Source: Paragordius varius
Lineage: Eukaryota > Animalia > Nematomorpha
Length of the DNA stretch: 64,000 nt
Reading direction: 5' to 3'
NCBI GenBank assembly: GCA_964247055.1
Contig: OZ176054.1
Location: 9,424,001-9,488,000 of the forward strand
Shown: in pieces, positions 15,701 through 64,000 of the stretch
Position numbering within the stretch: the first letter of the stretch is position 1
Layout: the number at the start of each line of letters is the position of its first letter
Made by a program: the position numbers and the translations under genes
The notes under the pieces: generated by a model
What the model saw: only the letters and a program-made list of their open reading frames with translations
Database searches by the model: none
What the model was told of the DNA's origin: nothing

Positions 15701-18700
15701 ATGGAAAGCGAAGCACAAAATTTGCTTCAAAGCATTATTGAAGGAGATTCTTTTAATCAGAACTTGCGTAAATTTTTAAATTAATCTTGATAAGCTGATG
15801 AAATAAATGAGGTATCTGTTGATTATCCCAGTCAATTCTTAAATGGAACTTTAACCTTTGAGGAGTATCAACATCTGCTTGAATATGGATCCAATGACGA
15901 AGAGGATGGTATTATTTTTATTTATTATTAGATAGGTTTTCTTTAAGCGATGAAGATTGGCTTCCGTCAGACAAGAAAAATGTCCAAGAAACAGAGAAAA
16001 GGGAACGCTCACGCATAAAAAGAAGTAATCTTCCCAAACATCTTCAAGGATTAATGGGGACTGCAAATTTACAATGGGCTAATGGCCACATTTCTGAGGC
16101 TTTTAAAATATGTATGGAGATTATCAGGTTCTTAATAATTTAATATGTTTCTTTGCTTAACTACAATACTACAACGAAATTAGTTTAAAGTCCAATGTTA
16201 TTATTTGCTATATGATCGATTAATGAATTTATTGTTTTTTGGCATTTCAATTAAAATATAAAATGACACTATAGTTATCTCGCAAATCCATTTTTCAGCG
16301 AAAAATATTTTCGTTTGGTATTTAGGGTGGCCACATTTGATATCTAGGGTTGTTGGCGATTAAAGTGGATATTGGTTGTTTAATGCCGGCTTTTTTTTCT
16401 CCTTTTAGGATATTTTCCTCATAACTGCAATTTAGGGGCGGGGGGTGAGGTTTCATTTAGTAAATAATTTTAACTCTTTATTAATTTTAATAAATCATCC
16501 GGCTTATGAAAAAGTGGGCCCAATTTGTGGGATATGTGGCCTAATTCTTATATATTGTTTACCTTATGTACTAGATGTCTTTTATTGTTAATAATAATTT
16601 TATTAAGGATTAATTGTGGTCGCTTAAAATATTCATCAAAATGTGGTATAAATTATTTAACTCTTTTATTTTCATTTAATTTTGAGATATTTTGATTATT
16701 TATTTTCACAACTTATAATATCCGCAAACATTGGTATAACACTGGACACTCTGCATTTTTAACCTTATATTTTATTGTATCCTCGAAAAGTTTTTGATTA
16801 CCTTTGCCTCTTATGATAGTTTTATACCCTTGAGCCAATTAAAATTTAAATGTCTAATAAGTATTTAAAGTGTTGAGCTAAATTTAAAAATCTTCCTTGA
16901 AAAATTTTAAAAATTAAAAAATCCTCATCTCTAACTTTTTTTAAAAATTTTTAATCAATACAACCGGCAAATAAATGCATATTATGGTTTAAAAAAGGAA
17001 ATTAACTAACTTCAGAAAACTTTCAGATTTTTATAGTAAATTGATACTCATAGATTTTAATATCAGTTGTTTGTTTCAATCGTGTTTCGGAGCTATCACC
17101 TGAGATTTAAGAAAATTCTTAAAATAATAGCTTTCTTATACAGGTATACAGACTTTAATATTAAATCTTAACCAAAACGTTTTTCATAGTAGTTTTTGTG
17201 TATAATATAACTTAAAAATGTTATCTGCAAAAAAATATAAAATAAAAAAGTATTAAACTGTTAAAAAGAATTCTAGCAAATTATTGTAAAAAAGTTGTTA
17301 TTAATATATTACATTTTATGGGTTTTAGTTCGTGTCCTTCGGCACATGAACCGTATAGCCTTTTAAGCGTTTTATACAAAGAAACGGGTGAACCCCAAAA
17401 AGCTTTACAAAATGCCATTATAGCAGCTAATCTTGATACAAGCCTCGATCCCAATCGATGGATAAAACTGGCCGAACATTATATGGATGATGGTCAAACT
17501 GTTGAGGCTCTAAAATATACTCGAAAGGTTTACATTTTTTTTATAAAAATATATTTTTATTATATTTTTATATATAATTTTATTAAATATATTTACAATA
17601 TTGTTTGAAACATTTTAATTGTATGCCTTTTTAGGGTGTCTTGCGAATTTTCACAATTTTTTTATAACACTCTACTTTAAATCTAATCATAATTCCACAA
17701 AATATTCCTTCACTCTAATTTGTATTTTAATAATATTATTTTCAATATACAAGGGACTGTAGTATAAAAAGTGCTATGTTTTTACATTATCTCCTATATT
17801 ATTTATATCAAACAAGTGTAGACAAACGTAAAAAACCATTGAAAATCGAAATGAATAAATTCTTATATTGATCGATCCCTTATAATAATAATATCACTAA
17901 TAATATGTGTTTTAGGTACTGTGTCTTTTGTATTCAAACGATTTTCGAATCGTCTAATATAACCGGAAGTACTTTTTTTGTTAGATTTTACTTTTAGAAC
18001 CGGTGCAGAAATTGTTTTAAAAGGAGGATAAAACCAATATTATTTTGAAATTTGACTGTAGCGGCTTACGAAATAATTGGAAACTTAACATGCAATTATG
18101 CGCACAACATCTTGGTAAAATTGATTTTTCGCAAATAATTTTTTGGAGAATAGTCTATTCAATTTAAAACGAACAAGAATACATTGTTTTACGGTCTTAT
18201 GTTGAAATCTATTAAATGGTTATAAATGCTCGCATATATTCTTTAAATGCGACCCGCCATTATATTTTGAGTTCAAAATGCGGCCCACGAAGCCATTTGT
18301 GTTTGACACCCCTGAACTTTAAAGATATGTTTTTCAAATTTTTTATGTCTTTCTGTTTATTGCCAATAATATTGATTAATTACAATTTACAAATGTTTCA
18401 TATTATATTTGATATTATTTATTTTTTAGGCAATCACTTCCCTTCGTTATAAGATTAAACGCGATAACAATGAACAAGATATTTTTCTACTTATCAGTTT
18501 GTGTTTTAATTGCGCTTTAGAGGAAGAAAAATTGAGTTTTCGAAAAGCTCTACAAGGTTTCATTTATTATATTTTTAAATGAGTAATTGTGCATAAATTT
18601 GTGTGAATTCAGTTAAAAATTAGTAAAAAGGTTATTTATTATTAAAACATTTATTGCTTCCCTTAATTGTTTTAACATAAATTTAACTTTAATAATTTTT

Positions 18701-21700
18701 TAGCTTATGAACAACTGTATCAGTACATGCTTAAATTCCGTGTATTCAATCATCCCGAAATCAAAGAACAAAACGTTATCGTTAAAATTGCTCAATTACT
18801 GCAATCACAGAAGAATGATGCACAAGCCTACAAAAGCTTACAAGCTATTTTTGTCAAATATCCCGTCGGGGATATAGATCATACAATCATTAATCTTTAT
18901 CTTGATGTTGCGGTAAATATATTAACTAACTAACTAACATGATTTAATTGTCAATAATCTATCTGACCTATGATTTTAATTTGATTAACGATTGTTTAAT
19001 TAAACTATTCACAAAAATGACTACAAATGTACTCTGAAATCAAACTGCTTAGTTCCAATTATATTTTTTTCTATTACGTAATCGGGTTGTTTTAGGGGTT
19101 AAGTTAAACCCTTGCACTTTAATTTAAACCAAACTATATTTTCAATAATTTTAGATAAAAACCGGAAATTATTTTGAAGTTCTTATCATACTTGGTAAAG
19201 TTTGTGCAATAGATTTTCTCTCACCTGCTCTCGTAAAATCGAATGTCGATTTCATCGATAGTTTTGCCAATAGACATATCAACCTACCTAGTAATTTACC
19301 GATCGATCTGCAATGTAAATTAGGCATTGCTCTTATTTTGTTGCAAAAGAAACCGCAATATAACTTTTTCGATGAACTATATTCTTTTCATGAAAATGAG
19401 GGTTTATACACCAAACTCCTGAACGAAATTGAACAAACGTTATTGAGTCTTGAACCAAATATGTTTGGTGATTTATACATAGATCTTATAGAGGCTTATA
19501 AAATAAAACCTGATATTGATATAGCCAATAATGCCACCTTACACCCAACAAAATTGGATTCATCAACATTCGCATATCGAATTCGTGATCTACATTTAAA
19601 AAAATCTTTGACTTTATTTTATAAACTACTAGGCATAACAACGCCCAATTTATCGGAATTGATTCAATCACGAAAAAAAAATAACTGGTCCCATTTCGAA
19701 ACCCAACTTAACGCTACTAATTATGTCGATATCCCAGGTATATGGCTTTCATTTTCCGAAGTTTTGGAGTATTTGAATTATCTTTCTCTGGCTCTTGAGG
19801 CGATTGAAAAAGTGCTAGCCATAATTCCTAATCATTTTATTGCAAAATTTAAGTACCGCACACTTAACAAAAAATTGGGGATTGAATTACCCATTAACAC
19901 GGTGGAAAAAACTTCTTTTGATGCCGTAAATCAAACATCAAACCTAAATGAGATTAAGGATTTAGGGAATGAACTAAACATGTTCCCATACCCCGCTCCC
20001 TATTATACCTTGCAATATTTTTCGAATCTCAATGATCTCGACCTACTTGAAGAATGTTTGAAAGAATGTCAAAATCTCGAATTACAAATGCATATTCATC
20101 AACATAATAACACCAGTGCACTCATGTTACCTGCTAATCGTACAACTGAAAATATATATCTTGAACGTTTTATAAATTATTCCATAATTTCATACGTAGG
20201 TATGGGCCTTTCCATTATCTATTCACTGGCGCTCGATAATACGGATGAGAGGTGCCTAATACCCAAATCATTTATTCAAAGGCATTTACATGCAACGAAA
20301 ATGAGATTACAGCATGATACTCATCATGGTGATATGTCGTCCGGTTTAAATCATACGCCCTTAACAAATGAAAAATATAGTATGGGATCAAAACGTGGTT
20401 ATTATATCATGAATTTGGCTAAAAAATTGTTTGAACGAATGATTGATACGTTAACTAAGCTTGTATTACAGCAAGAAAGCTATATGCGTGATAATGAAAA
20501 CTTTGAAAATCAAGAGGGGGCTAAATTTATACATGATACCCTAAATACTCTCTTATTTTTGTTATTGTGTGGCGCGGGATATCGAAATTTATTTTGCAAC
20601 AAAGATATAAGAAAACAATTAAAGTACAATGTAACATTCCTAGCCATTAAGCTTAACAATTGGCCGCTGACCATGGAATTTTTAAGAATGTTTATACGGG
20701 AAACTGATACAGGCATAAATAATGTCCAAATTAGTGACAGTACTTTATCAACAGATCAAATGATTTCGTTAACCGAATCGACTCATAAATATCGAGCCGT
20801 ATATGTGTTAAATACTAGCTTACTCAATACCTTAATTTACGTTTTTAATAAGACCCTATACCCAAGTGGAGATATGGAGGATGCATGCTTTAAAACTCCA
20901 TTCGCCGAAATGAATCTCACTGAGTCTCGGTCCTCACATGAACCCATAAATCCATCGGTAGTTAAGTTAAAGACAAACCTATATAATTTTAATGGCATAT
21001 ACAGGCTAATACGTTCCCGTTTAAACCAATGTGTCAATAGCTCTCGAGTTGTCGGACCAACTTACGAACCGTTGAATCAATTGATGGTGCTGACACACGA
21101 ACTTTTACATTCTTTTGCACTTGCTTCTATAAACATGAGCATTGGATATCATGGATCTGCCCTCTCTGAGTGCCGTAATTTACTTGTTTTGGCCCATAAA
21201 ATTCGATCCTTTCTGACACTTAACCCGGAATGTTTAAACATTTATTTTGGCCCGGATGAAATGGATCACATAGAGGCTCAAACATATTTCATGTTAGGGG
21301 TCTGTTTACTTAATCATTCCTGTAAACCGTATACCCTACATCGCCAAGCTCCTATATTTTTAGGGTTTCCCTCGCTCGACGCCCAAAAAGCATACGAGGA
21401 TTGTGCCAAAATTTTGGCTCCGTACATACCTATAACATATGCTTTTATCTGTTTTTCAATGTATCGATCCTTGAGAGTCGGTGAATATATTCGGGAAAAT
21501 GTTGAAAAAGATCAAACTTCAAGCATTGATGAAAAAAATAACCTATGTTTACAGCAAGAAGTGTTATATAATATTGGACGCGCATTTCATCAAGTTAATA
21601 TGATACCCCAAGCCTTGCATTATTATGAAGAGGCTTTATCCGTACCGCCAGCGCGTTTACAATCCCCTTCAACAGACGCCAACATTAAAAAAAAAATTAG

Positions 21701-21818
21701 TAAGGTTTTTACCTATGATCTCACAAAACACATAGCTTTCAATTTGCGAGCCATATATATGAACTCTGAATCCTATGATATGGCTTCCTATATAACACAG
21801 AAATATTTGCAAGAATGA
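15701..21818 (+). CDS. GTF3C3: General transcription factor IIIC subunit 3 (TFIIIC102/Tfc4), TPR protein, predicted 7 exons, ~1191 aa
   Basis: Exons 15701-15767, 15795-15908, 15932-16127, 17329-17527, 18430-18556, 18704-18912, 19155-21818 join in frame with GT-AG introns (3576 nt). Motifs FLNGTLTFEEY, SNLPKHLQGLMGTAN...ICMEII, EPYSLLSVLY...AIIAANL, LPIDLQCKL and C-terminal QEVLYNIGRAFHQ...ALHYYEEAL...AFNL match GTF3C3. The first exon is the least certain. Confidence 0.88.
18240..18314. mobile_element. One end of a Charlie/Buster-type hAT MITE in a GTF3C3 intron
   Basis: atgcggcccacgaagccatttgtgtttgacacccctg ends in the reverse complement of a CAGGGGTGTCAAAC-type TIR; the matching end and TSD are not clearly found. 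Confidence 0.45.
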
Positions 21819-22397: not shown

Positions 22398-22966
22398 TTG
22401 ACAATATCTTATTGACAATATTCGGTCACGGAATATTGACAATCTAGAGAATGGTTTTATAAGGACAAGTGTCGTATAACTTTTTTCATGTAACCATTTT
22501 TATAATAGGTCTATGTGTTTCCCACTATTCAGAAAAACTTTAAAAAATAGATTTCGAAATAACGAATCATAAATTAATCTTTAATCTTAGCCATCATTAC
22601 AAACCAATATCTTATTATAAAACGAGTTATTTTAGCCCTATTAGTCAAGTATATTTTTTACTTAAAATATGTTTGGTTTATTTTACGTTTGTAGGTTTTT
22701 CGGATATATATTACATAGCTCTGGGATTCACTAACTAAGCTTTTTTTGTCCAAAACACAGGGCATGGCATAATACAGAAACTAATATGAATTATCTCTGA
22801 TTTCGCATTCCCAACTAAATGAAATTTAATTACGTTATTTATTTAAACACACGATTATTAAGGCTTCATTTTTTGGTATTTTATATTATTCATATTATCA
22901 CAAAACGACCAAATATTTTATAAAATACATAGGTGTGGAATGTTTTATGGTAAAAACAGTACATAA

Positions 22967-24047
22967 TTTATATATTTATAAAAATGGAAAATGCTGGCTT
23001 TGTGATCTGGTACCGGAAAACCGGTAGACCCATTCAAATCCAAACTTCGAAAAAATATAATCATTAATGAATGCCCCGACAATAGCTTCGCCCTTTTTTT
23101 GAAATAGGCCCCCAGTTCGGGCCCACCCCGTGTGAAAAATGGTTTTTTTGAAAACATAAGTCCACAAAAATCGTGTCTTTGAGACAATTTTCCGTAGAAT
23201 GTGTTGGACCATTATTTCAAATATGATTTTTGTTTACTTATTTTCAATTGCGCCGAACATAGTCGTCTCGCTTTTTTGATTTAGGCCCTCTTTTTACCCG
23301 CTCCCCCTTAAAATGCCATTTTTTTCAAAAAACAAAGTCCACAAAAATAATTTTTTAAATCTATTTTTTGCCCTAGGTATGAGACCGTAAAAATTCGATA
23401 TGGATTCCGCGTATTCCCTGTTAAAAGGCAAAAATTTAAGTCAGGCGTTTCTTTGATGATAGCTGCTGGGTAATTAGCTACCCGCGAAAAACTGATTCCT
23501 CATGTAACTTCGTGATCTGTTTCCGGAAAACCGGTAAACCCAATCAAATTCAAATATCAAAAACATATAATCATTAATGAATGCCCCGACAATAGCTTCG
23601 CCCTTTTTTTGATATAGGCCCCCAGTTTGGGCCCACTGTGTGAAAAACGGGTTTTTTTGAAAACAGAAGTCCACAAAAATCGTGTCTTTGAGACAATATT
23701 CTGGAAAACATGTTGTATCATTAAATTTTAAATATGATTTTTGTTTGCTTATTTTCGATTGCGCCGAACATACTCGCTTTTTTGATTTAGTCTCTCTTTT
23801 TGCCCGCTCCCCCCTAGAATGCCATTTTTTAAAAAAACAAAGTCTACAAAAATAATTTTTTAAATCTATTTTCCCCCCAATTAAACAATATATTAGTATG
23901 AATGCTCCGTTTTAAAATTCCTATAAAATCATATCTATTAAATAATTTCGAAATAATCCACATAAGTGGATCATTTTATTGTCCCTTATTTCAAATAGCC
24001 CTACCCCCCCAGAGTCCGAAGGACTTCCTCGGCGAGATTCACCCTAG
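22967..24047 (+). mobile_element. Non-autonomous Helitron with internal duplication
   Basis: A|TTTATATATTTATAAAAATGG start (TC changed to TT), end accCTAG|T at 24044-24047, hairpin agtcc-gaa-ggact upstream. The 5' ~450-bp block occurs twice (22990-23400 and 23505-23900), joined by one satellite-type subunit. Confidence 0.85.
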
Positions 24048-31117: not shown

Positions 31118-33242
31118 ATGCTTTTTTGGTTGTTGTGCAAAAATCCCATAAATTTTATCCTAATTATCCTCTCTAGTATGACAGTCTTGCACAAAAAATG
31201 TGAAAGTAAAACCACCACAATGTCGATTCCTACCTTAGTAAAGATGAAATATATTGCAAACTTAATGGGCTTAAATCCAGCAATCATATTTTTTTATAAT
31301 ATTCCAGAATCTATATCACATTTTACGAACGATCCCGGGAAGTATTTTAATAACCATGGTTTTAAGAAATTCAATAATATTTCACCCACAAATATGCATT
31401 TAAACAACGAAAAGCTTAATATCCATCGAATATTTAGAGATATTAAAAAGTTTAACCCAAACTTGTTACAAAAAAATCAGGTATTAAAATTGAATAATGT
31501 CGTAAATATTACCGAAACTACTATACTTCTACCTAACGGAGAAAACGCAGATAATAATAAGAATAAGAATAAAAACAATAATAAAGGGCTTGTTTTACAA
31601 GGTATAGATCCATTCCAAAATTTGAATGAGAATGGGAGTGATCCCTTTATAACAAACATATTACCCCAAGAGCCCCTATTCCATATAAATTTAACTAACA
31701 TTTCAGATATAACAATTTCAACTCCCACCACGACTAACATACCGAATATTACTACTGCGATATTTTTATCTTCCATTGCTGATTTTCATCCCAAAAATTT
31801 GTCTAACATCAATCGAGCGGCATTTGTAAACAAAACCCAAAAGAGTAGAGTTTATCCATCCACGAGCATATTAAGTACTCCACCATATCAGACAACTCCC
31901 GCTATCGATCTACCAACAACATTATCCACAAACGATCTCAAACCCGAAGAACAAGAAAGCGAACAACGGCAACGGAGTATCGTACTGTTGAAAAGTCAAA
32001 TAACTTTTACACCCATATATCTCATTCTCCTGATCCTGGGTATTTTTGGCAATGCCCTTGTGATATATGTTGTGTGTTTTGATCGAAGTATGCGAAGTTT
32101 TACCAACATTTATTTGGTTAACTTAAGTTTGGCAGACTTGCTCATTATGCTAACATGTATGCCGACAGCTTTAGCTGATCTCTACTCTCAGGAGATTTGG
32201 CTATTTGGCAAAAATATGTGTAAGTTCATTCTATATTCCTTTTTCTATCTTTTTGATTACTAAGTGGCGTGGCAAACATATGGATAATAATAGATGATGC
32301 TGAACTATTTAGCATCAAAAAACTAATTAACTGTTTTCTGTGTTTGCGTATATGTGCTAGGGTTTTTCAAAAGACTTTTTATAATTTTATTGTTGTGTTT
32401 CTTTTGTAATTTAAATATTTTAGGAAGCAAAATTGTAATAGCTAGAGTCAAGTTGACTAAACCCATGATGATAATTAATATATGTGCAAAAAAAGTTTTG
32501 CTTGGCAAAAGTCAGAAAAATTTGTATGCTAAAGACAAACCCCGCATTTTTTATTCAAAAGAAAAATTTCATTGATGTCATTTTATGAATAAATTAATGG
32601 GATATTTTTGCAACACAACTACAAGTTTTTCGATTAAATTTTTGTAAGTAAAGGAACCTGGTTAACATAAAAAGGTAACAATTAAGTTAATTTTTTTATA
32701 ACATTATATAACTTAACGATATGAATAAATTTACTAAATGTTAAACTTAAATTCCAATTTTGTTAAAAACATGTTTGCACATACTTATTACAGTGATCAA
32801 GATCCTAATTATCGGGCTACTTTATTTGGGGAACACAGATAAAATATATTATATTTAAGCAATATAACTTGTAATATTTTTCTTCTCGCAGTGGGATTCT
32901 TATGTCTTAAAAATATATTTGGGATAATATGAGTATATACTTCATAACCGTTTTCAATTCATTTGCAAAATTATTTTGAAAAATGTGATGTATATTTTCT
33001 CTTCTCAAACTTTTGTCTCCATGTATTTTTTTGGATTCTTTGCAATAAAAGATAAAAACCCAAAATTAACGAGCGATTTTTATATGCATGGGAGCATAAT
33101 AATTTTGGACCACAAAAGTTGGAAAATTATTAGAAAAAGCTTTTTGATAACAGTTAGTATAACGTTTTGCAATTTATTTTAAGTAAAGTTTTTATTATAT
33201 TTTTATTACGATATTAAGACTGTATTAGATATAGATTCATAT

Positions 33243-33281
<39 letters not shown>

Positions 33282-36200
33282 ATATAAGGAAGTTAATTTA
33301 CATTTACTATAAAAAATTTCTGAGTTAAATACATATTTCGATAAACGAATCATGATTATTAAGGACTTTTTGCTAACTTTTGTGGTTGTCCCATACAGAA
33401 AGGTCATATAATTAACGTATGCAATTATTTTTTGGTAAAAGTCAAAAGCTTAAATCCAAATGTTGATATAAATTTATAATAAACTATGTAAGCAAAACAA
33501 AAACTATAAATATAATATATAATATAATTATTTAGAATGCGCTAAAATAGAGTATTGTTCATATAAACAAAGATGATTAGCTGGAATTTTTAATGTATGC
33601 CAAATTATGCTAAATTTTGCAGATACTAATATTAAGCCATTTTGAAGCATAGAAACGGTATAATAACATTTTAGGATATTTGTTTTACGGCATAATTCAA
33701 TGCTTCTGAAATCTATATTCACAAAATATGATTAATCGATTCGTTCGTCCAATTTACGTAATTTTAAGGCAAATCTTTTAAAAATGTGAAGTAATAAAAA
33801 TGATCATCATTTTATGAGGAAAAAGTTTTTTTATAGATATTATAATTATAATATCTTTAAGTTTTAATTATACTATTACCACGTTTTAAAATAGTATAAA
33901 TGCCAAAATATAAATTTTAAAGCAAAATATGCTTGAAAATATTTATTTGATGTTATAAATAAAAAAATATGGCACATCCGCTCTATTGTGTTTAACGGAT
34001 TTTACAAGAGTAGTTTGAAAATATGAGACTTTTGGAGCTCATATGTAATTATTATGTTATAATTGTTTGGCTTTTTGTATCTAGTCTATGATATATTTTA
34101 ATATTTTTTAGTATAAATCATCCTTCCACTAAAATATTTAGTACATATACGCTAATTTTGCGATCATATATGTGGTGCAAATCACAAAAACAGTCTATAT
34201 ATATTTTAAACACTGGGCCAAACCAAAAAAAAAGTGTTCCAGATACATTTTTCTTTCACAGTTATGTTTTATCAGTGTAAAATTTATCACAACCGTTTTG
34301 GGGTGTTGAAAATCATAAATCATTTAAATTTGTAGAGAGAACGTTATTCGCTTATTAGTCAATATCAAATACACATTTTTGCCACAACTTAAAAACACAA
34401 GTAGATTTTATTTATTACTGTATTTATTACCATTAGATGTGTTTGACTTATAAGTCTAAAAGATGATATGCGCTCGCTATGATACTTCTGCAAACGCCTA
34501 ATTAGTATTGAAATTTTGCCACAGAATGGTAATTAGGATCAGACTTATAACTAGGGTGGGATTTGGACCGGTCCAAGGATATCCGGTCACGCTTCTGAGT
34601 ACAGTCTTATTTAGTAATAAGAACTTTTTATAATATTAAAAACTCAATTTTCTAAATATACAACTTTAACAATTGATAAAAGTTTAGGTGTTCTTATAAT
34701 TAAAACTTAAAATATCATTTACTGATTGTATATCAGGTGATGAACATATGGTCAAATGTTTTTGTTATTTTTATAAGCGTGAACAATCACGGTTTCGACG
34801 TATTAATACGATCAAATTTATTCTTTCATCTTATAAGTTTAACTTATTAGATTTATTTTGGCCATAGTAATAATAATTATATATAATAATAGAGAATATT
34901 ATAGTTTATCATCTAAATTTAATAAAATAGCAAAGGGCGGCTATGGATACGACCTGCATAATAATAAAGTTTAAATAATCGATTCACAGATAATTATAAT
35001 AATCAATTTTAGGGATTTGTGATCTGAAATGTTAGTTATTGATATTTAGCCATTATTCTAAAAAAAACTTTTACATTTTCATTTATTTGAACTACTGTTT
35101 TTTCCTGAATGGAACCGTCCAAAATATTTTTTTTCTCATAACACAAAATTGACCTATTTTTTATGTTTCTTTTTATTCTAAACTAATAAATACCACACAA
35201 AAAATTGTTGCGCCAATATTTTTTATTTTTGGCTAGTTATTTAAAATTCAAAATAATTAGGCTTTCCATATCTTTTGGCGTAAAATCAACGGAACCGTAA
35301 CTCAACCATTATTTTCGCAAATTTTTTGGACCATTAATCGGAATAAAAATAGAAAAAAATAAAAATGATATGGAACCAAAAAGGATTTCAGTTATTCTTT
35401 ACATATTTCGAAAAGGAGCCAGTCTTAATAGTCATATTGCTTATATATTATTAATGGGTAAATTTATAATGCTACTTGCAAATGATGCGCTTTTGATGAA
35501 TGACTTAAATTTAATAAAATATAATGGCCTCGAAATATTCCCTTTCTTTATATCTAACAACGAACCCCTATGTATGCATTGAATAGTTTTGCTCATTCAA
35601 ATATCTCATAAATATCTAAGGGAACATTACATTTAGGTTGCTGTCTGCTTAGTGGTGGTTTTTTAATCTCTTTATATGACATATGAATAATTCCTTTTAA
35701 TCAAACCTAAAATTAAAACATACACATCCTTCATCCAAAATCAAAAGAGATTGAGATAGAAGATCAACAATGTCCAATTATTTTATTGCAAACATTTTTC
35801 ATTTAGTAAATCTTTGGAATCAAATAAATCGTAAAAATAATTTGTCACTTTTAGTTTTTGCTTTAACATTTTTTGATGGTTTGTTTTATGTTTATAAAAG
35901 TATATAATAAATTATATCCTTATATCCTTATTTCCTTTTATCCTTATCAGTCATTTTATATGTTAGTGGTGTGTTGTAAAACCAAATGAATATTAGGAGG
36001 TATAGATATTCACAGTTTAGTATTAGATAGAGATATAAATTAGGTAAATAGAGAGGACATATTAAATCACACGAGGAAGGATGTGTATGTATACGATATA
36101 ATTATAATGGCATCGAAACTAATCTGTCATCTCGTTAATTTCGGATATTATTGTGCCAGTGTAGAACGTTTAGATAAACTTGATTTGCAATGTAGTTTTG

Positions 36201-39006
36201 ACAATTTATAATTTCCATATAAAATTCATAACACGATCTCCCTATCTCTCTAAAATATATTAAACCATCTTTTACACTGAAAAATTAGTAATAGGATAAT
36301 GTGATGTTGACTAACTGTTTGATTTATGGTATCATTTATATTATCGTCGCACATATACAGGATTCAAACGAACTAATTATTATTATTACAGAATTAATTA
36401 AAATATAATTTTTCATGGTTGTTTTAGATTAAAATATACAAATTTACAGTAAAAATTGATACGGACAAAACGCGTAAAAATGTAGAGGCAAATATTTTTT
36501 TTCTAAAATACATCCATACTTTTTAAAACCTATTTAATATAACTTATTGGTTTAAACTCCAAAGTTCAGAATAGAGATGTATATTGGTAACACAATCAAT
36601 TACATATTTCACGATTGTTAATAAATGATTTTAATAGGAAAGATTAAGGTTTGAAAAAGTATGATTGTCTTTTGAAAAAAAAAATGTCTTTATATTTTTA
36701 CTGTAAATAACAATTCATTTTTAGGTAAAGCTGTTCCATTTCTCCAATCGACTGTAACTCGAACATCAGTGTTAACTATATTAGCCATAAGTTTTGAACG
36801 CTTCCTAGCCATATGTTATCCACTCAAAATGCAAGGCTACATATCAGGGGCAAGCCTTGGGCGTTCAACGCGAAACATTCTAATTATATGGAGTGTTTCC
36901 TTACTCACTAATACCCCTTACATAAATATAACGAAATTTGTTTTAGCGCCCCATCAAAATGGTCAAATGGTACCAGTGTGCGTTACTTCCATCCACAAAC
37001 AATGGGAACAAATATTTTTCTTAGTATCTGTAACTATTTTTTACCTTATACCCCTAATTATATTGCTCTGTCTCTACTATAAGATTGTAAAGGTACTGGC
37101 CAAGAGTCAGGACATTGATTCTACAGTTGAACGTATGAAACGAAAGGACACCAAGCGCTTACTAGCCAGGCAAAAAAGATTTGAGGCACAAAATTTACAA
37201 GTGTGCCACACGGGAAAAAGTAGGGATCAGGATGAAAAAAATGTGTATCATAAATTACAATTAATGTGTAAAAACAGGAAATCTGCCAACACAAACTTAT
37301 CTAAAGTCCAAAAAAGTTTTACAATAAATAATAAGAACAATGACAAAAACGTTAATGTAATAAATTACGACACAACAAAGGCTTTAAAAAGCACAAACTT
37401 ATGTTATAAAAAACCGCCAATTACTTCGTTAGTTAATAGTGATATGTTAAAGGCTTGTATGACCACCACAAACCACAATCAATCTATTAATGTGAATGAG
37501 AGAAAAAAGAAATTAAAAAAATGCAATTTCACAAATTCCATTGTAAATGTCAACAGTGGAAGCACTGATAAAGATGATGTTCAAGACCTTGATTTTTCCC
37601 ATGATGGTAATGGTATTGATAATTATTTAAACAAGCCTACAAACCACCATACAGTTAGCACACATATTAACGCAAAAAACAATACAATAATAAATTCCAT
37701 TATTGATAATGGCCAACAACACTATCAGCCAAATGACAAATTTTATTCTTGTCCTTCTTCTCATTCTTCAACTCAAAGGCCAAAAAATCAAGATAATAAA
37801 TTATTATCAAATTGTGATTCCAAGAAAGACACAACTAAAACAAATAAATTTTATCAAAATATTACAATGATGATGGTTCCCATTACATCTTCTCCCATGT
37901 CAAAAATGTCATCACAAGAAAAGACTGTTTATCAAGCGTCCTCCCTCTATAAATCAATAATGAAAAATGGTAATAAAAATTCAACTATTGCCAATATGTC
38001 AACAGAGTGTCAGCATCAAAATCCTATCGAAAACAATAGCAATGAAGAAGATCATTTTAACACAAATAATCATACGAATGATGAAATTGAATTTAGAAAA
38101 AACGATTTAGATAAAGAAAATAGCCAGCAAGTTGATAATACAATAGTAATAAATTCCCTTTTAGATAAATCGTCAGTTGCACAATCCAATTTTATCAATG
38201 TGACACGCGATCGTGATGCCGAAAAATGCCATAAAGACAAATGTCAATCCAAAGTTATACTTCAATTTAATGATAATAGTAATTCTAATAAAAAGTCATC
38301 AAAATTAAAAAACAAGTCTCAAACATTAAACGGTAACCACAACAATACTGACGATGATTTTAATAAAACAATTATAATTTCCAACAAGGACACAAAAAGA
38401 AATTTCACATTATCCAAAATTGATGGAACCGATAAAGTAATTCTCCCAGCCCACGAGAGTAACAAAATTAAACGATCCAAATATATTAAACATTCATTAA
38501 CACAACCAATCCGGCCCAATAGCATACGAAATCAACAGAATCAACACATCCAGCATTATTCATGCGATACACCTTCTTTTGGGAATAAAAAAGAAATTTC
38601 ATCATCTCAAAGCAGGAGTTTTAAGCGAAAACAATTTACCCTTAATCGTTCCATTACTTTAGGACAAAGTACAAGTGTTAGTGGGTCCAAACCCAAAACA
38701 ACAATTACAGCCATTAATCAGGGCCGTAAACAATTGATTGTAATGTTAATTTCGGTGGTCGGTATGTTTTTTATTTGCCTACTTCCATTCCATTGTCTCA
38801 GTATTTGGTTAATGTTCGTCCCTCATACACGTGTGATGGCTTTGGGTGTCGAAAAATATACCGTTATTTTATGTTTTACACGAGTTATGTATTACCTAAA
38901 TTCAGCCATCAATCCAATCTTGTACAATGTTATATCAACCAAATTTCGGAAATCGTTTGCCCGCGCACTTAACACATGTTTTTGTCTTCGTTCATCTTCC
39001 CAATGA
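31118..39006 (+). CDS. Class A neuropeptide GPCR, ecdysis-triggering-hormone-receptor-like (TRH/GHS receptor-related), 2 exons, ~1127 aa
   Basis: Exons 31118-32219 and 36725-39006, phase-1 GT-AG intron splitting MC|KAVPF. Motifs GIFGNALV, NLSLADLL, CKAVPF...SVLTILAISFERFLAICYPL, RKQLIVML...FFICLLPF...LWL...LG.E.Y...F.RVMYYLNSAINPILYNVISTKFR closely resemble recalled arthropod ETHR sequences. Confidence 0.85.
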
Positions 39007-41008: not shown

Positions 41009-42504
41009 CTAGTAAAATATTTAATTTAAAACAAAAATGTGTTAGCCTTTCCTTATTACTCTGATTTAGGAGCTTAATGCAAAATGCAGGAATTAAAATT
41101 AAACCGTGATAGTGGAAATCTATCATAATTTTTGGGAAACCTTTTGAAACCAAAAAACGGTTTTAAAAATATTATATTCTATGGAGATTTGAAAACAACT
41201 GTTGATATAAATAATTTTTGAACTTTTTAGTGAATGTATCATACAATACAATTTTAGGCTATATTTATTAAAATAAAGAGATCTGAGATTCATGATTATA
41301 TACGAGTTCAGTCAATTTAAAAAACTATGCAATCACATCATAAATTTTATCGAATAATTTGTCAGTTTAATATGCTTTTTGTTAGATAATTTTTTGATCA
41401 TTTAAGTCAGGAATATAATTAAAATACACATTTAACAAAAATAATGTTACATGATATATGTTTGTATTATTATGGAAATCAAATAAGATTGGAAAATAAT
41501 GAGAAATATGTGGTTAAATTTAGTAAAAAATGCGAAAAATAATGAAATATACGTAATTTATAACATTTATATATCGTATAAGGATTCAAAAAATATAATG
41601 AAATATTTACCGTATAGGGTTTCGATTGCATTCCAAATCTAATAAAATATAATGTAGTAAAGTAAAATGCAAATATTAAATTACATTTTGTCAAAATAAA
41701 AATCTAATAGAATTAGACAAAAAACCCAAGATCAACAGTTCATTATTTTTTCCACTTTTTTTGTATTATTTAACCTTTTGGGTTAATATTCCAGAGCTCA
41801 ATTTTGTAAATAAATTCTAGTTTTGAAAGTTATTTTAGTTAAAGTTTAATTATCAATATATTAGATAAAAAGTTATATTTTTACAGTTTTGTGATTTCTA
41901 CTGCTCCAAAATACAATTGAAACGAACAGCTGACATTAAAATAAAAAATGTATAAGGTTTTGCTGGTAAAATGTAGCCTAAAAACTTTTCAAAATTAATT
42001 ATTTTATTTTTCTAACCATGGTGTACAGTTATTTGCCTGTTGCAATAGCGATTTAAGAAAATTATAGAAAAAATGGCGGCAAAAAAGTTTGAGATGAGGA
42101 TTAATTAATAATTTTACATTTTTAATGCGCCTAAAAGGCTAAAGAAAGCATATTATTAAATTCGGCTTAATACCTTAAATACTTTTTAAGATATTCGAAT
42201 TTCAAATCGCTCCAGGATATTAACCTGCCCCAAAAGTGTTAAATTTATATTGAGGACAATCATTTTTAAAATAAACGATGATTGCTCCAAGTCCAACTAT
42301 GTTTTAAAATGTGCAAATATTTGGTCATATTGTAGTACTGAAATTCAATTTTAAATAGAGCCCAAATTTTTTAATAACATTAAAAACATACTATGGCAAT
42401 TTTTTACAATAACTTAACTAATTTAAACCCACATCATTATATAAATACACAATTATTTTGTAAACTTTCACTTATTTGAAGTATATAAAATATATTGATG
42501 GATC

Positions 42505-45027
42505 CTACTTTGATGCCAAAGAATTCGAGTTTGCAGAATCTTTGAGTGTTTTAGAGTGCCGACCACCCGAAGAAAAATTGAGGAGTAACAAGGCGGCTGG
42601 ATCAATGTTAGCCATTGTTTCAGGGGAAGCTAATGGGCTTGGAGTAGTCGTACTCTTTCCCAACACTAAATAACATTTTGTAAAAATGTAGATTTAAAGA
42701 AAAATGTTTAAAAAGGTCGTTAGAAAGCCATTTTCTGAAAAAGTAGATTACATATTTTTTATTGAAATAAATACGAAGAAAAATGTTTTAAAAGCAATGT
42801 TATTGTTAAAATTTATACAAAATTCGCCAAATTGAGCAAAGTTAAATAAAAATTTTGAGCTAGAAATAGCAAAGAAATGGATTAAAGGCGAACAAAATCA
42901 TAGTTTATAACATAAAGGTTTGATGCACAGATAAAATAAATGAGAATAAAACGCAATATATATTGCAATAACATCAAGAAGATTGAGTTAATGATTTATT
43001 TAGTTAAAACATTTTTTAGAAAATTTTATGTTTTATACACTACAATATCTTTGGAAATAAATTTATAATAAAAATAAAAATCATTATATTGAATAACCTA
43101 ATTATAAGGTTTTAGTATTTTTTATACTAATCATGGTTTAAGGCGGTATACTTATTTTATACCATATTCTATTACAATTTTATATATATAATTTAAAGCG
43201 TTTATTGTTAAGCATTTAGAAATAGGGACATTGCTTTACTTGAAACTATAGGAGGGGGCGGGGGTGGGACACACAATATCACATTGCTAGAAACATTAGG
43301 GGTGGAACTTAAAATTATATTATGCTTGGAGTCAGGAGGAACAGGCAATAATGATTGTGGTAAGGAGGGAGCTTGCTGATGTTGCAAGGTTGTAGTATCA
43401 ACCAAACTTTTCATCCCTAATTATATATATACCATTTTCAGTTCAAATTCACCCTGAAATATTATGTTTTTTTTAAAAAAATTTAAAATTAACTACATTT
43501 TTTAACATTTTTAAAAAATGATTTTTGTTTAAAATTAATATATAATATTGAAAAAATAATGAACTATGCTATAATGGATATATTTTATATTGTTGCTAAA
43601 TTCATTGTTAGTGCAATGATATGGATATTAGAAAGAGGTCTATAGTATGCATTTTAATGGTTGCTTATTTCACACCATAGTAGGGCAACTTGCAGCGCAG
43701 GATGTATAAAAAAGAAAAGAAATAATTTTTTGTTTAACATATTGTTGTTTTTTCCACACACTACTGTGTTGCGAATTGCCCTACTATACTGTGAAATAAG
43801 CAACTATTAAAATGCATACTGTATATTAATATAATAAACCCTAGAATTGTTTACAAATTAGGAAAAATAATGCAAAAATGTTTGTCTGCAAAAGTTAAAA
43901 TTTATACATTTCCAGGTTTAAAACGATTCTTAAAATTATAAAAACAAAAAAAATTCAAATGAAATTCGGAAAATACAAAAAATATGATGAAAAAATGGAA
44001 AAGATAATTTTTCAAAATAAACCCTATGAAAACGTTCTATCCTAACTAACTTACATATAATCGCTAATAATTACAACCTGGGCAATTAACATTGGTGTTG
44101 GAGAATAAAAAGGGTATAGGTGGTGGAGGCATATTCAATGATGACGATATATTTGCTAGCGTTTTGGTATCAAGCGGTTTGTATGAATTTATGCTGGATT
44201 CAGAGGTTTTAGGGTTGGTTTGTTTGTAAAAAATTGAACTTATTGGTTTATTGTAATTTGAAGGGGCAATCGATGATTTATTAGCCGGTGTCATATTTAA
44301 TTTTTGAAGCGACGGAGTTGAATGCAAATTTGTGGTATCTTTACTACTGACTACCATATATGGATGGGTCATGGTTCTTTTATAATTTTGAGAGAGTTTT
44401 GTGGTTGAAACACCGGATTCTAATTTAATGTCTTTGTTAATATCCAATTTTCGAGCCTGATTATCAGAAGGTTGAATAGGGGGATTTTTAGATTTACTGT
44501 TATTTTTGGCTTTTTCAGTTTCAATATTTTTTCGTGTTTCGGTCAAAATCGATTTTAACGGTTTTTCATCCGTGTTGGTTTCATTGCTATGTTTACAAAA
44601 TATATTTAAATCCTCTTTCGAAAGATATGATAAGTTGCAAATTTTGGCTTGTATTATCTCTTGGCAAATATGAATTTTATCAAAAGGAACTTTTTCAACA
44701 AGCGTTATTAAAGAATTACACCTATAATATATTTAATGATAACTGAAAGCAGAAGTGATCCTTTAAATTATTAACACAATCAAAGCAAAACGAATGTTTG
44801 CACGGCAACTACTAATTACAAAAAGAATACCAAACGGCCGTAAATAATTACAGGGCAGTCACATATACCACACATATAAAATTTTGTTTTTATAACAGAT
44901 GCATTGTTAGAAATCTATATAAAAATAAAATAAAAACCGGATAATCCCATTTTAAAGTTGTTTCTTTTTTGAAAGGAAAGCTGTTAAAGTCGAAAAAATC
45001 GCAATTCAAATCAGAGTTTTTCTCCAT
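42505..45027 (-). CDS. CBLL1: Hakai/CBLL1 E3 ubiquitin ligase (RING/HYB domain plus Pro-rich tail), 6 exons, ~406 aa
   Basis: Exons (-) 45027-44938, 44914-44831, 44808-44744, 44721-44078, 43416-43240, 42665-42505 join in frame (1221 nt). Spliced protein: LKWDYP|ISNN...FYICGICDCPVIIYGRL|LPCKHSFCFDCVNNLKDHFCFQ|CNSLITLVEK...IHIC...ICNLSYLSKEDL, matching recalled Hakai [27 protein letters not shown]...CPGC...FMC...CKRTYLSQRDL. Confidence 0.85.
43643..43821. mobile_element. Tc1/mariner-type MITE (179 bp) in a Hakai intron
   Basis: ~50-bp TIRs (tagtatgcattttaatggttgcttatttcac...tagtagggcaa vs ttgccctactat...gtgaaataagcaactattaaaatgcatactg) flanked by TA on both sides. Confidence 0.85.
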
Positions 45028-45439
45028 GTGTTATTGTGCATACATGTTGTTAGCTAGAGGTTTCGATCTGCGCAAAAGCGGTTTTCATTATTTTATTTGC
45101 TAATATTCTTGCTTGCCTAGAATCTTACTAATTTTAATTCTTTTCTTGGTCTGAATATATTTTTATTATGGATTCACTCTTGCCTATATTAATCGAATTT
45201 CCTCCTTATTTATAACTATTCGTTTTCGCTTTTAGCGCTATTTAACATGATATTTAGTTTTTTGATGATTAATTTTGTTAATCGGTAACTCGCTTGTAAT
45301 ATGTTAATTTTTAACTCATCGTGTTGTTATCATAAATCATTAATTAGTTTAGGCCCCTAATATATATCGATTTTTTACATTTGCTTATCATCTATGTATT
45401 CTAGTATCATAAGTTTCATTGCATATATTTGTTAGAAGC

Positions 45440-46497: not shown

Positions 46498-47098
46498 CTA
46501 GCGTAAATCTCGTGCTGCTACCAGCCCGAGGAATTCCTTCGGACTTCTGGGGGGGGGGGGGGGGGGGCTATTTGAAAAAAGGGACAATAAAATGATCCAA
46601 ATATGTGAATTATTTCGAAACATTATTTAATAGCTATGATCTCATAGGAATTTCAAAACGGTGCATTCATACTAATTTGTTTACTTGGGGGAAAAAGAGA
46701 TTCAACAAATTATTTTTGTGGACTTTGTTTTTTGAAAAAAATGGGATTTAACGGGGGGAGCGGGTAAAAAGAGGGCCTAAATTAAAAAAGCGAGACTACT
46801 ATGTTCGGCGCAATCGAAAATAACTAAACAAAAATCACATTTGAAATTGAATGGTCCAACAAATTCTCCTGAAAATTGTCTCAAAGACACGATTTTTGTG
46901 GACTTCTGTTTTCAAAAAAAACCTGTTTTTCACACGGGATGGGCCCGAAATGGGGGCCTATTTCAAAAAAAGGGCGAAGCTATTGTCGGGGCATTCATTA
47001 ATGATTATATTTTTTCGAAATTTGGATTTGAATGGGTCTACCGGTTTTCCGGAAACAGATCACAAAGCCATCATTTTCCATTTTTATAAATATATAGA
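46498..47098 (-). mobile_element. Short non-autonomous Helitron (601 bp)
   Basis: On the minus strand A|TCTATATATTTATAAAAATGG...cgggctggtagcagcacg hairpin...gagatttacgCTAG|T: canonical 5'-TC, 3'-CTAG, A|T insertion and no TSD. Confidence 0.9.
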
Positions 47099-48065
47099 TT
47101 ACAGATGAGTTTTTACACATTTTTACCCCTACATTTTTGAGTAAAAAAGTAAAATTATATACAGACAAAACGTTAAATCCTAAAACGAAATTTTAAAAAG
47201 CAACCAAACTTTTTCACCCTTGATTTTTTATTTCTTAAAAGTAATCGTTTAAAAATTGCAAAATACAAATAGAGATGTAAATTGGTAACATATTTAATTA
47301 TTTTATATATTTAAAATTGTAATTACAAAATTTAGGTAGTACCATCAATATTTAATAATTATTATTAAAAAAATTTATCTGCCTATTAATTTTTAAACAC
47401 ATCTTGTCTGCATGATTATTTTGATTTTATTATCTAGTATAAATATTGATAATAAAAAATTTAGCCAAAAACAATATTCCGAAAAAAGTTGTACATTATG
47501 ATTTCAATGGTTTTCTTTTTTCTCATGGGTAATTTTTGAAATTATATACATAATTAATACATCCTATATTGTCATTTAAATACGATTTTCGTAAGTATTC
47601 ATCAAAATTAAAATTTGAACAATTTAATATCATTTTTATTTTATTCACTAACCTTTTAAAAATAATTGTGAAAAAAATATATAAATCTCATAACCAAACC
47701 AATATCTCTCTTATTTATGTTGTAATTTAGCCCAGAAGCACATAATCTGTTTCTAGGATGAATTTGAATAATTGTTAGAGTTAATTTCGATGGTAAAAGA
47801 AAAAGTTACTATTTTAAAGCGGTTCTCAATTCACATCCTGGTTTAAAAATTAAACAAACAAATATTTTTCAGTCCTCAGTATATTATATTTTTTAATACG
47901 ATTTTTCCGTTTATTTATTGATTATTATGCCATATAGTAGCATATGGTGCGAAATAATTTTGGCTAGTTAGATATTTTTTTTGCTTTTTCTTGCTATCCA
48001 CCAATTATAATTCTCTGGCTGTATATGATATTAGCATTAATATTCAATGAAAAACTAGCAATGTA

Positions 48066-52404: not shown

Positions 52405-54955
52405 TAAGGTGACCAGATTTTTTAAAGGAAAAGCCGGAAAAATCTGAGAAAGTGGGGGAAGGGGCATGGGGGGGTACAACCAAAAATTTTTATACAAAAA
52501 ATTATTGTAATATTTATTTATATTTAACACAAATCTATATATTTATAAAAATGGAAAATGCTGGCTTTGTGATCTGTTTCCGGAAAACCGGTAGACCTAT
52601 TCGAATCCAAACGTCTAAAAAATATAATCATTAATAAATGCCCCGACAATAGCTTCGCTCTTTTTTTGAATTGGGCCCCCAGTTCGGGCCCACCCCGTGT
52701 AAAAAACGTTTTTTTGAAAGCAGAAGTCCACAAAAATCGTGTCTTTGAAACAATTTTCCGGAGAACGTGTTGGACAATTCAATTTCAAATATGATTTGTG
52801 TTTATTTATTTTCGATTGCGCCGAACATAGTAGTCTCGCTTTTTTAATTTAGGCCCACTTTTTACCCGCTCCTCCCCGTAAAATGCCATTTTTTTTCAAA
52901 ACAAAGTCCACAAAAATAATTTTTTTAATTATTTTTCCCCCAAGTAAACAATATATTAGTATGAATGCACCGTTTTAAATATGAGATCATAGCTAATTAA
53001 TGCTTCGAAATAATCCACATATGTGGATTCTTTTATTGTCCCTTTTTCAAATATCCCCCCCAGAAGTCCGAAGGACTTAATCGGGCTGCGTAGCAGCACG
53101 AGATTTACGCTAGAACATTATAAATACAAAAAATATTATACTCCTTGGTATATTTTTTATTTGAGTGAATGCGTGTTAGCAGATTGTCATCATTTTTTAA
53201 AATATTGTAGAAGTCTTCACAAGAATTCGTCAAATTATATTTGATAGATAAAATGGCCTTGAAAGTTTCATTATTTGAATTTGATTTTTACGATGCCCAC
53301 ACTTGATTTACTGTGGAAAAAACGCGCTCAGTAGCAGCGTTTGTCCAGGTAAAGATAGTGCAAATTCCACAATTATCAAAACATTATTGTTTGGAACATA
53401 GTTTGTTTCAAAATAATGAAATATTTCTAACCATTTCTTTTCTACTCTATTTTTTTCTGTTGTTTACAATTTAAGTTTCTCATTATATTTATATTTTTTA
53501 GCTAATGATACTTCAGAAAAAAGTCTCTGAAACATTACTTTTTGGGAATTTTTGAGAGATGCAGATGTAATCAATGATTTTTGAACATCGCACCAATTAA
53601 ATTCTGGTTTGAATGTTATCCAATGAAAATGTTCAATTTCATTGAATTGCACCGTCCAGTCTTCCAAATAATCTTTACAGTTTTTATAAACATTTTTATA
53701 TGATACAGGCTATCTGGCGATTTATTAAGCCTTGTTTTTCTAAATTATATATAATATTGCGGATGATTAATGGTATACATTATTTTCTAACCTTTCGTGA
53801 CATTGGAATTTTAGGTTACTAACTTCATTGGCTACTTCGATTGCTGAAATTACCTTCTAATTAATAACATTTTGAAAGAGAGAAGCTTGATTATGTAGGA
53901 ACTCTAACCATATTTTTGAAGAATAACTACTTTTCCAAAGTTTTAGGACATTTGTCTGATAAAAAATTGGATTTTATAGGAATACATTTTTAAAATTCTT
54001 TCGATAGCTGGCAGAAGTGCTAACCAACGAGTTTCACAATATCCAAACATTTTTTATATTGAACTTCTGCATTTTCACAGAATTCCTTAAGCGTTTTCAC
54101 GCGTACCATGTATATAAAAACATAGGAATGTATTTTAACAACTACATTTTCCACATCTAGGGGTAACAAATTAGCAGCTGTTTGAATAGCGTTGTGCATT
54201 ATATGCGCTGCACACCCAACGCCAATAAAGTTTTGATGAAGATTATCTGCTAATTAATGAAAAATATTTTTTGTCCCCCTTTTTGCTTTTCCACCGAAGT
54301 TCGTATTGGTGTTGTCAGCGCAATATGCGATGATTTTGTCTTTTAAATTATTTTTTTCTAGAATATTGATTATTTAAGTAAAAATTATGACGGAATTTTC
54401 ACCGGATAGAGAAATAAAATTTAAAATTTCTGGATTAAAATATCTTATTAAAGTGGGAAATAATTTTGTTTCTTTATACTCTATTGCATCAGAGTATAGC
54501 CGTATGAAATTAATTTTCAGCAAATTTTTTTGTATTTTAGAAAATGCATGTGGTGAAAGGACATTGCATACAATGGCTTCAGCCTTTGTACGGGAGCATG
54601 TAAATTTTTTATTGGATAAGGTACGATTAACCTGTGAGGTACAACCCATAGATCTAAGGGAATGATTGTGATTAACGGCGTGAAAAGATAAAACGCCTTC
54701 GGCTAGTGCCAAATTCTTTTCTTCCTCCAAAAGCGTTAGAAAAACGCTCATTTTGTAAGATGATTCCGCCATATCTAAATATTTTTTTTGTTTCTTTGTT
54801 TCCATATGCTTTGTAATATCATGCTTGCCACCATGTGCTAGGGTAAATTCCCCCTCGCATAAAGAACATTTAACAATTGAATTCCTCGTTTTTTTGATAA
54901 AAAGAAATTCCTTCATTAATTCATCGTTGAATTTACAACCTCTTTTCGTACTCAT
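52405..54955 (-). pseudogene. Decayed hAT DNA transposon (Blackjack-like TIR) with transposase pseudogene at ~53230-54955
   Basis: Minus strand: N-terminal zinc finger CSLC...HGGKHDITKH, SD..KLFPTLIRYF, ADNTNTNFGG, GVGCAAHIMHN (CxxH), TRWLALLPAIERIL, ERVFS, with stops and frameshifts; TIR-like taaggtgaccagat at 52405. The other TIR was not found. Confidence 0.85.
52534..53113 (+). mobile_element. Short non-autonomous Helitron (580 bp) nested in the hAT element
   Basis: A|TCTATATATTTATAAAAATGG start, cgggctgc-gta-gcagcacg hairpin and CTAG at 53110-53113; collinear with the 46498-47098 copy. Confidence 0.9.

Positions 54956-56664: not shown

Positions 56665-64000
<7,336 letters not shown>

Follow-up and report, generated by a model that had tools for sequence, protein, structure and literature searches.

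Three candidate spliceosomal introns of 22-23 nt in the 5' part of a predicted Hakai (CBLL1) gene of the hairworm Paragordius varius

The introns of Paramecium are about 25 nt long and those of the Bigelowiella nucleomorph 18-21 nt. Stentor has introns of 15-16 nt (cited in PMC13644364). In a comparison of 51 animal genomes, introns of less than 30 bp were found only in myxobolid myxozoans and in Dicyema japonicum and were tied to parasitism and genome reduction, with median intron lengths of 22-27 bp in the myxobolids and a genome of 75 Mb in Henneguya salminicola; the text names no nematomorph (Hadjez et al., 2026; PMC13644364). In flatworms (Opisthorchis felineus and others, including Schistosoma mansoni and a tapeworm), microintrons with a peak at 37 nt and a second peak at 90 nt are clustered at the 5' ends of genes, next to introns of about 3 kb (PMC6530080). 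We found no literature that connects hairworms with short introns, and the paper on the genome of Gordionus montsenyensis, which gives a BUSCO completeness of 71.6%, never mentions introns. Here we analyze a window of 64,000 nt from the hairworm Paragordius varius (Nematomorpha), comprising positions 9,424,001 to 9,488,000 of the forward strand of contig OZ176054.1 (assembly GCA_964247055.1), in which a predicted gene for the RING protein Hakai (CBLL1) appears to carry three consecutive introns of only 22-23 nt in its 5' part. Coordinates are counted from the first letter of the window, and the gene lies on the minus strand.

When the DNA from 45027 to 44700 is read unspliced, stops occur in all three frames, whereas removal of three tiny segments leaves a single open frame from the ATG at 45027 through 44064. 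This ATG, the earliest start codon downstream of an in-frame TAA, heads exon 1 (44938-45027), whose 30 codons are open to the donor and end in phase 0. Tiny intron 1 (44915-44937; 23 nt, GC 9%, phase 0) is followed by exon 2 (44831-44914), the 28 codons of which encode the initial RING CxxC together with the IYGR motif, and tiny intron 2 (44809-44830; 22 nt, GC 23%, phase 0, with a tandem AG at its 3' end) by exon 3 (44744-44808; 65 nt), which contains the RING core C-x-H-x2-C-x2-C and ends in phase 2. Tiny intron 3 (44722-44743; 22 nt, or 23 nt in a common allele, GC 14%, phase 2) lies within the last CxxC, and exon 4 (44078-44721) supplies the final RING Cys and the zinc-finger part of the HYB domain, continuing as an open reading frame (ORF) through a low-complexity linker. 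All three tiny introns run from GT (5' sites GTT, GTA and GTT) to a terminal TAG. With 9-23% GC they are poorer in GC than the flanking exons (31-34%; 0.31-0.45 in the exons overall), and none of them, at 23 nt for the first, 22 nt for the second and 22 or 23 nt for the third, has a length divisible by three. Retention of intron 1 causes a frameshift with a stop 15 codons on, retention of intron 2 introduces an internal in-frame TAA, and retention of intron 3 leads to a stop at the intron's own terminal TAG.

After splicing, with junction phases of 0, 0 and 2, the zinc ligands of the RING follow the pattern CxxC-x12-C-x-H-x2-C-x2-C-x8-CxxC, and the junctions fall after residue 30, after residue 58 and within codon 80, the third interrupting the codon for Gln in the final C-F-Q-C. 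Introns 2 and 3 cut a zinc finger whose ligand spacing fixes the positions of the junctions. A preliminary description of this DNA, made from the letters alone, had already placed the three GT-AG segments at these positions with the same ends and lengths, had claimed that the Hakai N-terminus is continuous only upon their removal and that the third junction falls within the final CxxC, and had given the next two introns of the gene as 661 and 574 nt long, all of which was confirmed, the two longer introns having GT..AG ends at 44077-43417 and 43239-42666. Its restored Cys/His pattern likewise holds apart from one spacing, which is x12 and not x11, and of the three introns that it described as splitting the RING domain the second and third indeed lie inside, while intron 1 is located 14 codons upstream of the first RING Cys.

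The three segments are the only set of GT..AG segments whose removal yields an open frame together with a RING finger. Within 45027-44560, 156 GT..AG segments of 15-200 nt are present, and when all sets of up to three non-overlapping segments were enumerated, 487 combinations left the frame open, of which just one, consisting of 44937-44915, 44830-44809 and 44743-44722, also gave the RING pattern. In a complementary window test every window of 8-79 nt, whatever its ends, was tried in place of one intron while the other two were kept unchanged, and this was done for each of the three introns. Frame and RING were preserved by 64 windows for intron 2 and by 18 windows for intron 3, and in either case exactly one of these was bounded by GT..AG, compared to 0.12 and 0.03, respectively, expected by chance. 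Because the GT..AG windows are unique against such low expectations, the interpretation of segments 2 and 3 as real introns is strongly supported at the level of the sequence. The same interpretation of segment 1 is moderately supported, owing to its likeness to introns 2 and 3 and to the fact that it is the sole GT..AG window of 8-79 nt that links the ATG-headed ORF to exon 2 in frame. A blind census of GT..AG segments of 18-32 nt joining two open stretches of at least 25 codons had no power, with 208 cases compared to 204-294 for control dinucleotide pairs, and homology is thus needed to call such introns.

Such homology is provided by the joined domain. The joined RING of 53 residues matches the Pfam family zf-C3HC4 (PF00097) over positions 1-40 of 40 with 22.0 bits (cutoff 21), and its top matches in the PDB are the two solved Hakai structures (E 3e-7). 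When the joined RING/HYB region of 101 residues was used, the best PDB matches were again Hakai, 2mq1_A and 3vk6_A, with an E value of 4e-11 over 83 residues, the runner-up being the RING protein TRIM56 (E 3e-3). Residues 17-99 of the query pair with residues 2-84 of the chains in this alignment, which passes through junctions 2 and 3 without interruption and reaches 47 residues into exon 4. The unjoined pieces gave far less: exon 3 on its own reached only positions 15-30 of the 40 of the Pfam RING profile and otherwise just generic partial RING matches, exon 2 and the exon-4 ORF had no PDB match, exon 2 had no Pfam match and the exon-4 ORF chance-level Pfam matches only, none to a Hakai-related family, and a comparison of the unjoined pieces with a protein atlas returned noise only. 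Exon 2 aligns to 2mq1_A/3vk6_A solely once it is fused to exon 3. No homologue of the joined 101-residue domain was found in the protein collection searched, and a scan of metagenome loci yielded none either.

The predicted protein shares with the human Hakai RING-HYB domain (3vk6, 2mq1) the C3HC4 RING, the motif P-x-x-IYGR-x-x-PCKH-x-FC-x-DC and the subsequent zinc-finger part C...C...YLS-x-x-DL. It differs in the last RING loop, which is 3 residues shorter, and in the loop between the two HYB Cys, which is 3 residues longer than in the human protein. In the third zinc site both Cys align, whereas the first His of the human H-x2-H-x-H cluster is aligned with a Phe next to a Cys, and one His is retained. 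In addition, the RING is preceded by a short N-terminus of 44 residues, and no similarity is detectable in the C-terminal half. On these alignments, which also bear out the naming of the gene as Hakai in the preliminary description, we identify the predicted gene as a Hakai/CBLL1 orthologue, in itself an ordinary gene.

Independent DNA data confirm the presence of the tiny segments. Contigs over the region were obtained from the DNA-type libraries X1, X2, X4, X6 and X7 and contain the tiny segments; a single X2 contig covers all three from 44482 to 45070, and intron 1 is carried by contigs of X1, X2 and X4. Since several separate DNA libraries carry them, the tiny segments are not assembly errors. 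The contigs of all runs are within about 2% of the window, and the runs consequently represent individuals or haplotypes of one species and not different species. X4, X6 and X7, which are of low depth, carry three different organism labels that may refer to hosts, relatives or mislabelled samples, and the loose ends of X6 and X7 start with GATC, which suggests Hi-C libraries.

The differences among the libraries are distributed as in a coding sequence interrupted by introns. The only indel listed across the Hakai exons and the tiny introns is a 1-nt insertion behind 44727 in X2, X6 and X7, which lies inside intron 3 and makes this intron 22 or 23 nt long depending on the allele, while none is listed in the exons. 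Among the listed single-nucleotide polymorphisms (SNPs) of the exons, 14 of 24 are synonymous in the spliced frame, whereas the two alternative frames give 7 and 2 and a share of 22-28% is expected (binomial P 1e-4 to 2e-3). In the RING/HYB region 5 SNPs are synonymous and 2 nonsynonymous; exon 2 has 2 synonymous and 1 nonsynonymous SNP, and the single SNP of exon 3 is synonymous.

Based on these results, we assign a probability of roughly 85% to the reading that the three segments are genuine U2-type (GT-AG) introns located towards the 5' end of an intact Hakai/CBLL1 orthologue under purifying selection. Several observations weigh against it, and some of them concern the first intron. For intron 1, 1019 windows qualified in the window test, among which 1 GT..AG was found compared to 1.9 expected, a result that is uninformative for this intron because its distance of 14 codons from the first RING Cys leaves it unconstrained by the test. 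Exon 1 is the weakest of the exons: no search tool detected any homology, both of its listed SNPs are nonsynonymous with none synonymous, and an open stretch of 30 codons is just mildly unusual at 28% GC. These features would also fit a gene with genuine introns 2 and 3 but a spurious intron 1, translation starting at an ATG one codon before the first RING Cys or another upstream exon being joined through a longer intron to the acceptor at 44915, with 45027-44938 being noncoding. We consider such a structure unlikely, given that the 23-nt segment matches the other two in length, composition and TAG end and is the one GT..AG segment of 8-79 nt that connects the ORF headed by the ATG with exon 2. 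Moreover, human CBLL1 has a W-D-aromatic motif 18 residues before the first RING Cys, and at the same distance the spliced protein contains a W-D-Y, which spans junction 1.

The remaining observations that weigh against genuine introns in an intact gene concern the locus as a whole. Words of the Hakai gene occur in no listed RNA run, including runs of the same species label, and the RNA runs X8 and X9, which carry this label, yielded no contigs at the locus even at 80-90% likeness. The list of SNPs is incomplete for 44241-44459, where further differences of X2 are unlisted. Furthermore, one X4 contig of 308 nt fits the window over 44768-44999, while its other 76 letters match nothing nearby, so that it leaves the window inside exon 3 at an unexplained break; this break at 44768 is not at a GATC or GANTC site and could reflect an insertion allele, a structural variant or a chimeric contig. 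Together with the lack of a homologue of the exon-4 ORF, for which none was detected in a word-indexed search or in an exhaustive search of 1.84 billion representatives, the missing transcripts and the X4 contig are what might be expected if the locus were a decaying pseudogene or contained local assembly indels, the segments being chance intron-like insertions, an objection that the preliminary description had itself raised. This is, however, highly improbable in view of the reproduction of the segments by separate DNA libraries, the intact state of all RING zinc ligands with a full Pfam profile above the cutoff, and the skew towards synonymous SNPs in the spliced frame only; in addition, the frame-breaking segments are all GT..AG with a GC content far below that of their flanks, and the sole listed indel falls inside one of them.

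Removal of the segments by a process other than splicing was also considered, either through somatic DNA excision, as of the internal eliminated sequences of ciliates, which are likewise short, AT-rich and interrupt coding sequence, or through translational bypassing. However, the ends of the segments are GT..AG and not TA..TA, the DNA libraries including those of Hi-C type keep the segments, and none of the listed contig joints skips any of them, which argues against removal at the DNA level. We know of no precedent for the bypassing of three separate elements in one nuclear gene, and we give this group of explanations hardly any credence. As a candidate class in its own right, the ciliate-type internal eliminated sequence was rejected on the basis of the GT..AG ends and the retention of the segments in all DNA libraries.

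If the three segments are genuine introns, the pre-mRNA would be spliced by intron definition, with the ordinary major spliceosome recognizing its sites across the intron. Recognition would have to rely on a minimal 5' site, consisting of GT followed by T or A, on a T/A-rich body and on an assumed branch A a few bases before the terminal TAG. The bodies of the tiny introns are T/A-rich and contain several A residues 3-8 nt before the AG; three introns are too few to define a motif. In intron 2, splicing at the inner AG of the tandem leaves an in-frame TAG, and hence the outer AG must be used, which would fit a branch point located too near the inner AG. With no length divisible by three and a premature stop after retention of any segment, unspliced mRNA would be truncated and would probably be eliminated by nonsense-mediated decay. 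Both properties also agree with the surveillance model proposed for Paramecium introns.

The long introns of the same gene lie downstream of exon 4, which ends at 44078/44077 with a donor of CAG followed by GT. Intron 4 (43417-44077; 661 nt, phase 1) has a GC content of 0.23, compared to 0.32-0.43 in the exons on either side, and is followed by the proline-rich exon 5 (43240-43416; GC 0.43), which has an open frame from phase 1 to phase 1. Intron 5 (42666-43239; 574 nt, phase 1, GC 0.21) is of single-copy depth in the DNA runs and leads into exon 6 (42505-42665; GC 0.45), which is open to the TAG stop at 42507-42505. Both long introns are likewise bounded by GT..AG. No homology was detectable for exons 5 and 6; in the predicted frame exon 5 has 4 synonymous and 3 nonsynonymous SNPs and both SNPs of exon 6 are synonymous, giving 6 synonymous of 9 for the two exons. 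The complete model encodes 407 amino acids.

Intron 4 contains an element resembling a miniature inverted-repeat transposable element (MITE) at 43641-43823, to which no strand is assigned, with 60-nt terminal inverted repeats (43641-43700 and 43764-43823) that are 87% complementary. In X1 and X2 the word depth of the element exceeds that of single-copy sequence about 1000-fold, and this high-copy MITE inflates intron 4. The short mirror-image ORFs found on either strand of it are artefacts of the palindrome. Introns of 22-23 nt accordingly occur in the Hakai gene together with a MITE-bearing intron of 661 nt and another of 574 nt, and for this reason the tiny introns would represent a short class clustered at the 5' end of a gene in a repeat-rich genome and not a by-product of genome compaction.

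With respect to size, the closest counterparts are the introns of myxobolids and dicyemids, which are also of the GT-AG type, about 22-27 nt long and located in animal protein-coding genes, with 5' sites that extend little beyond GT and one base, no clear polypyrimidine tract and a possible branch A near the 3' AG. This combination of a length below 30 nt with reduced splice-site motifs is found in all three tiny introns. In contrast to the Hakai gene, which has 574- and 661-nt introns and high-copy transposon sequence within a single gene, the genomes of myxobolids and dicyemids are compact and the tiny size is the median of all their introns. A tiny size as the genome-wide norm of a compact genome was considered as a separate description of the hairworm and was rejected, in view of the 661- and 574-nt introns, the roughly 1000-fold MITE and an intron of about 4.5 kb in a G protein-coupled receptor (GPCR) gene of the window.

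With respect to layout, the Hakai gene resembles those flatworm genes in which a short intron class adjoins kilobase introns in large, repeat-rich genomes of parasites. The flatworm microintrons, too, are adjacent to each other and biased towards the 5' end, and they are under-represented by annotation software with too high a minimum intron length. They differ in having a peak of 37 nt, above the 30-nt limit, compared to 22-23 nt here, and in reportedly possessing splice sites nearer to the consensus, while the 5' sites of the three Hakai introns are weak. The Hakai case is therefore one of myxobolid size and flatworm layout. Ciliates and nucleomorphs provide a further parallel, insofar as a canonical U2-type spliceosome is able to excise introns of 15-25 nt, but they are unicellular, nearly all of their introns are tiny, and no long transposon-laden introns coexist with them. 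The preliminary description had placed a class of ultra-short introns beside long ones in a transposon-rich animal and took this to imply a spliceosome that handles both extremes; the coexistence stands, whereas the handling of both extremes has a precedent in flatworms (PMC6530080). What is unusual here is the absolute intron size of less than 30 nt, not the coexistence of short and long introns.

It is possible, though we would put it on the doubtful side, that this animal belongs to a third, independent lineage of animals in which spliceosomal introns of about 22-23 nt occur; unlike in myxobolids and dicyemids, they would here be clustered at the 5' end and lie in a large transposon-rich genome with long introns. 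If this is true, intron miniaturization would be uncoupled from genome compaction, and gene finders set to a larger minimum intron length would fragment such genes, so that part of the low BUSCO completeness and of the loss of universal genes reported for hairworm genomes could be an annotation artefact. Confirmation by RNA would indicate that the lower size limit of animal splicing is not bound to genome compaction and that the flatworm-type layout of 5'-clustered microintrons reaches about 22 nt in another phylum, and intron-length settings would then have to be lowered to 20 nt or less for the gene sets and completeness scores of such genomes. The window itself is AT-rich (GC 25-35%), and its overall GC content of 28% and its repeat load are compatible with the 26.9% GC and 63.8% repeats of the Gordionus montsenyensis genome.

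A second gene of the window also appears to contain tiny introns, judging from its reading frames. At the 5' end of a GTF3C3 gene on the plus strand (15701-16127), an exon aligns to residues 130-176 of human GTF3C3 (E 1.6e-6), and the ATG at 15701 reaches this exon only after excision of two AT-rich, phase-1 GT..AG segments, 15768-15794 (27 nt) and 15909-15931 (23 nt). The C-terminal end of an ORF at 19338-21815 aligns to GTF3C3 residues 811-881. A rhodopsin-type GPCR gene on the plus strand (31118-39003) is split over two large ORFs, with the Pfam 7tm_1 match to positions 1-68 ending near 32260 and that to positions 74-200 starting at 36769, which implies the above-mentioned intron of about 4.5 kb. 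A DEAH-box helicase gene has exons on the minus strand at 62533-63958, with an HA2 domain at 60633-60953, and continues beyond the end of the window; its introns, as read from the ORFs and not measured, are a few hundred nt long and not tiny. A search of the window against Rfam gave no match. A second repeat of very high copy number lies downstream of the Hakai stop at 41768-42303, and the contigs contain many variants of it with internal deletions. Up to four copies of another repeat family are present at 10134-11914, 22961-24026, 46498-47101 and 52529-53113, and about 12% of the window matches another part of the window.

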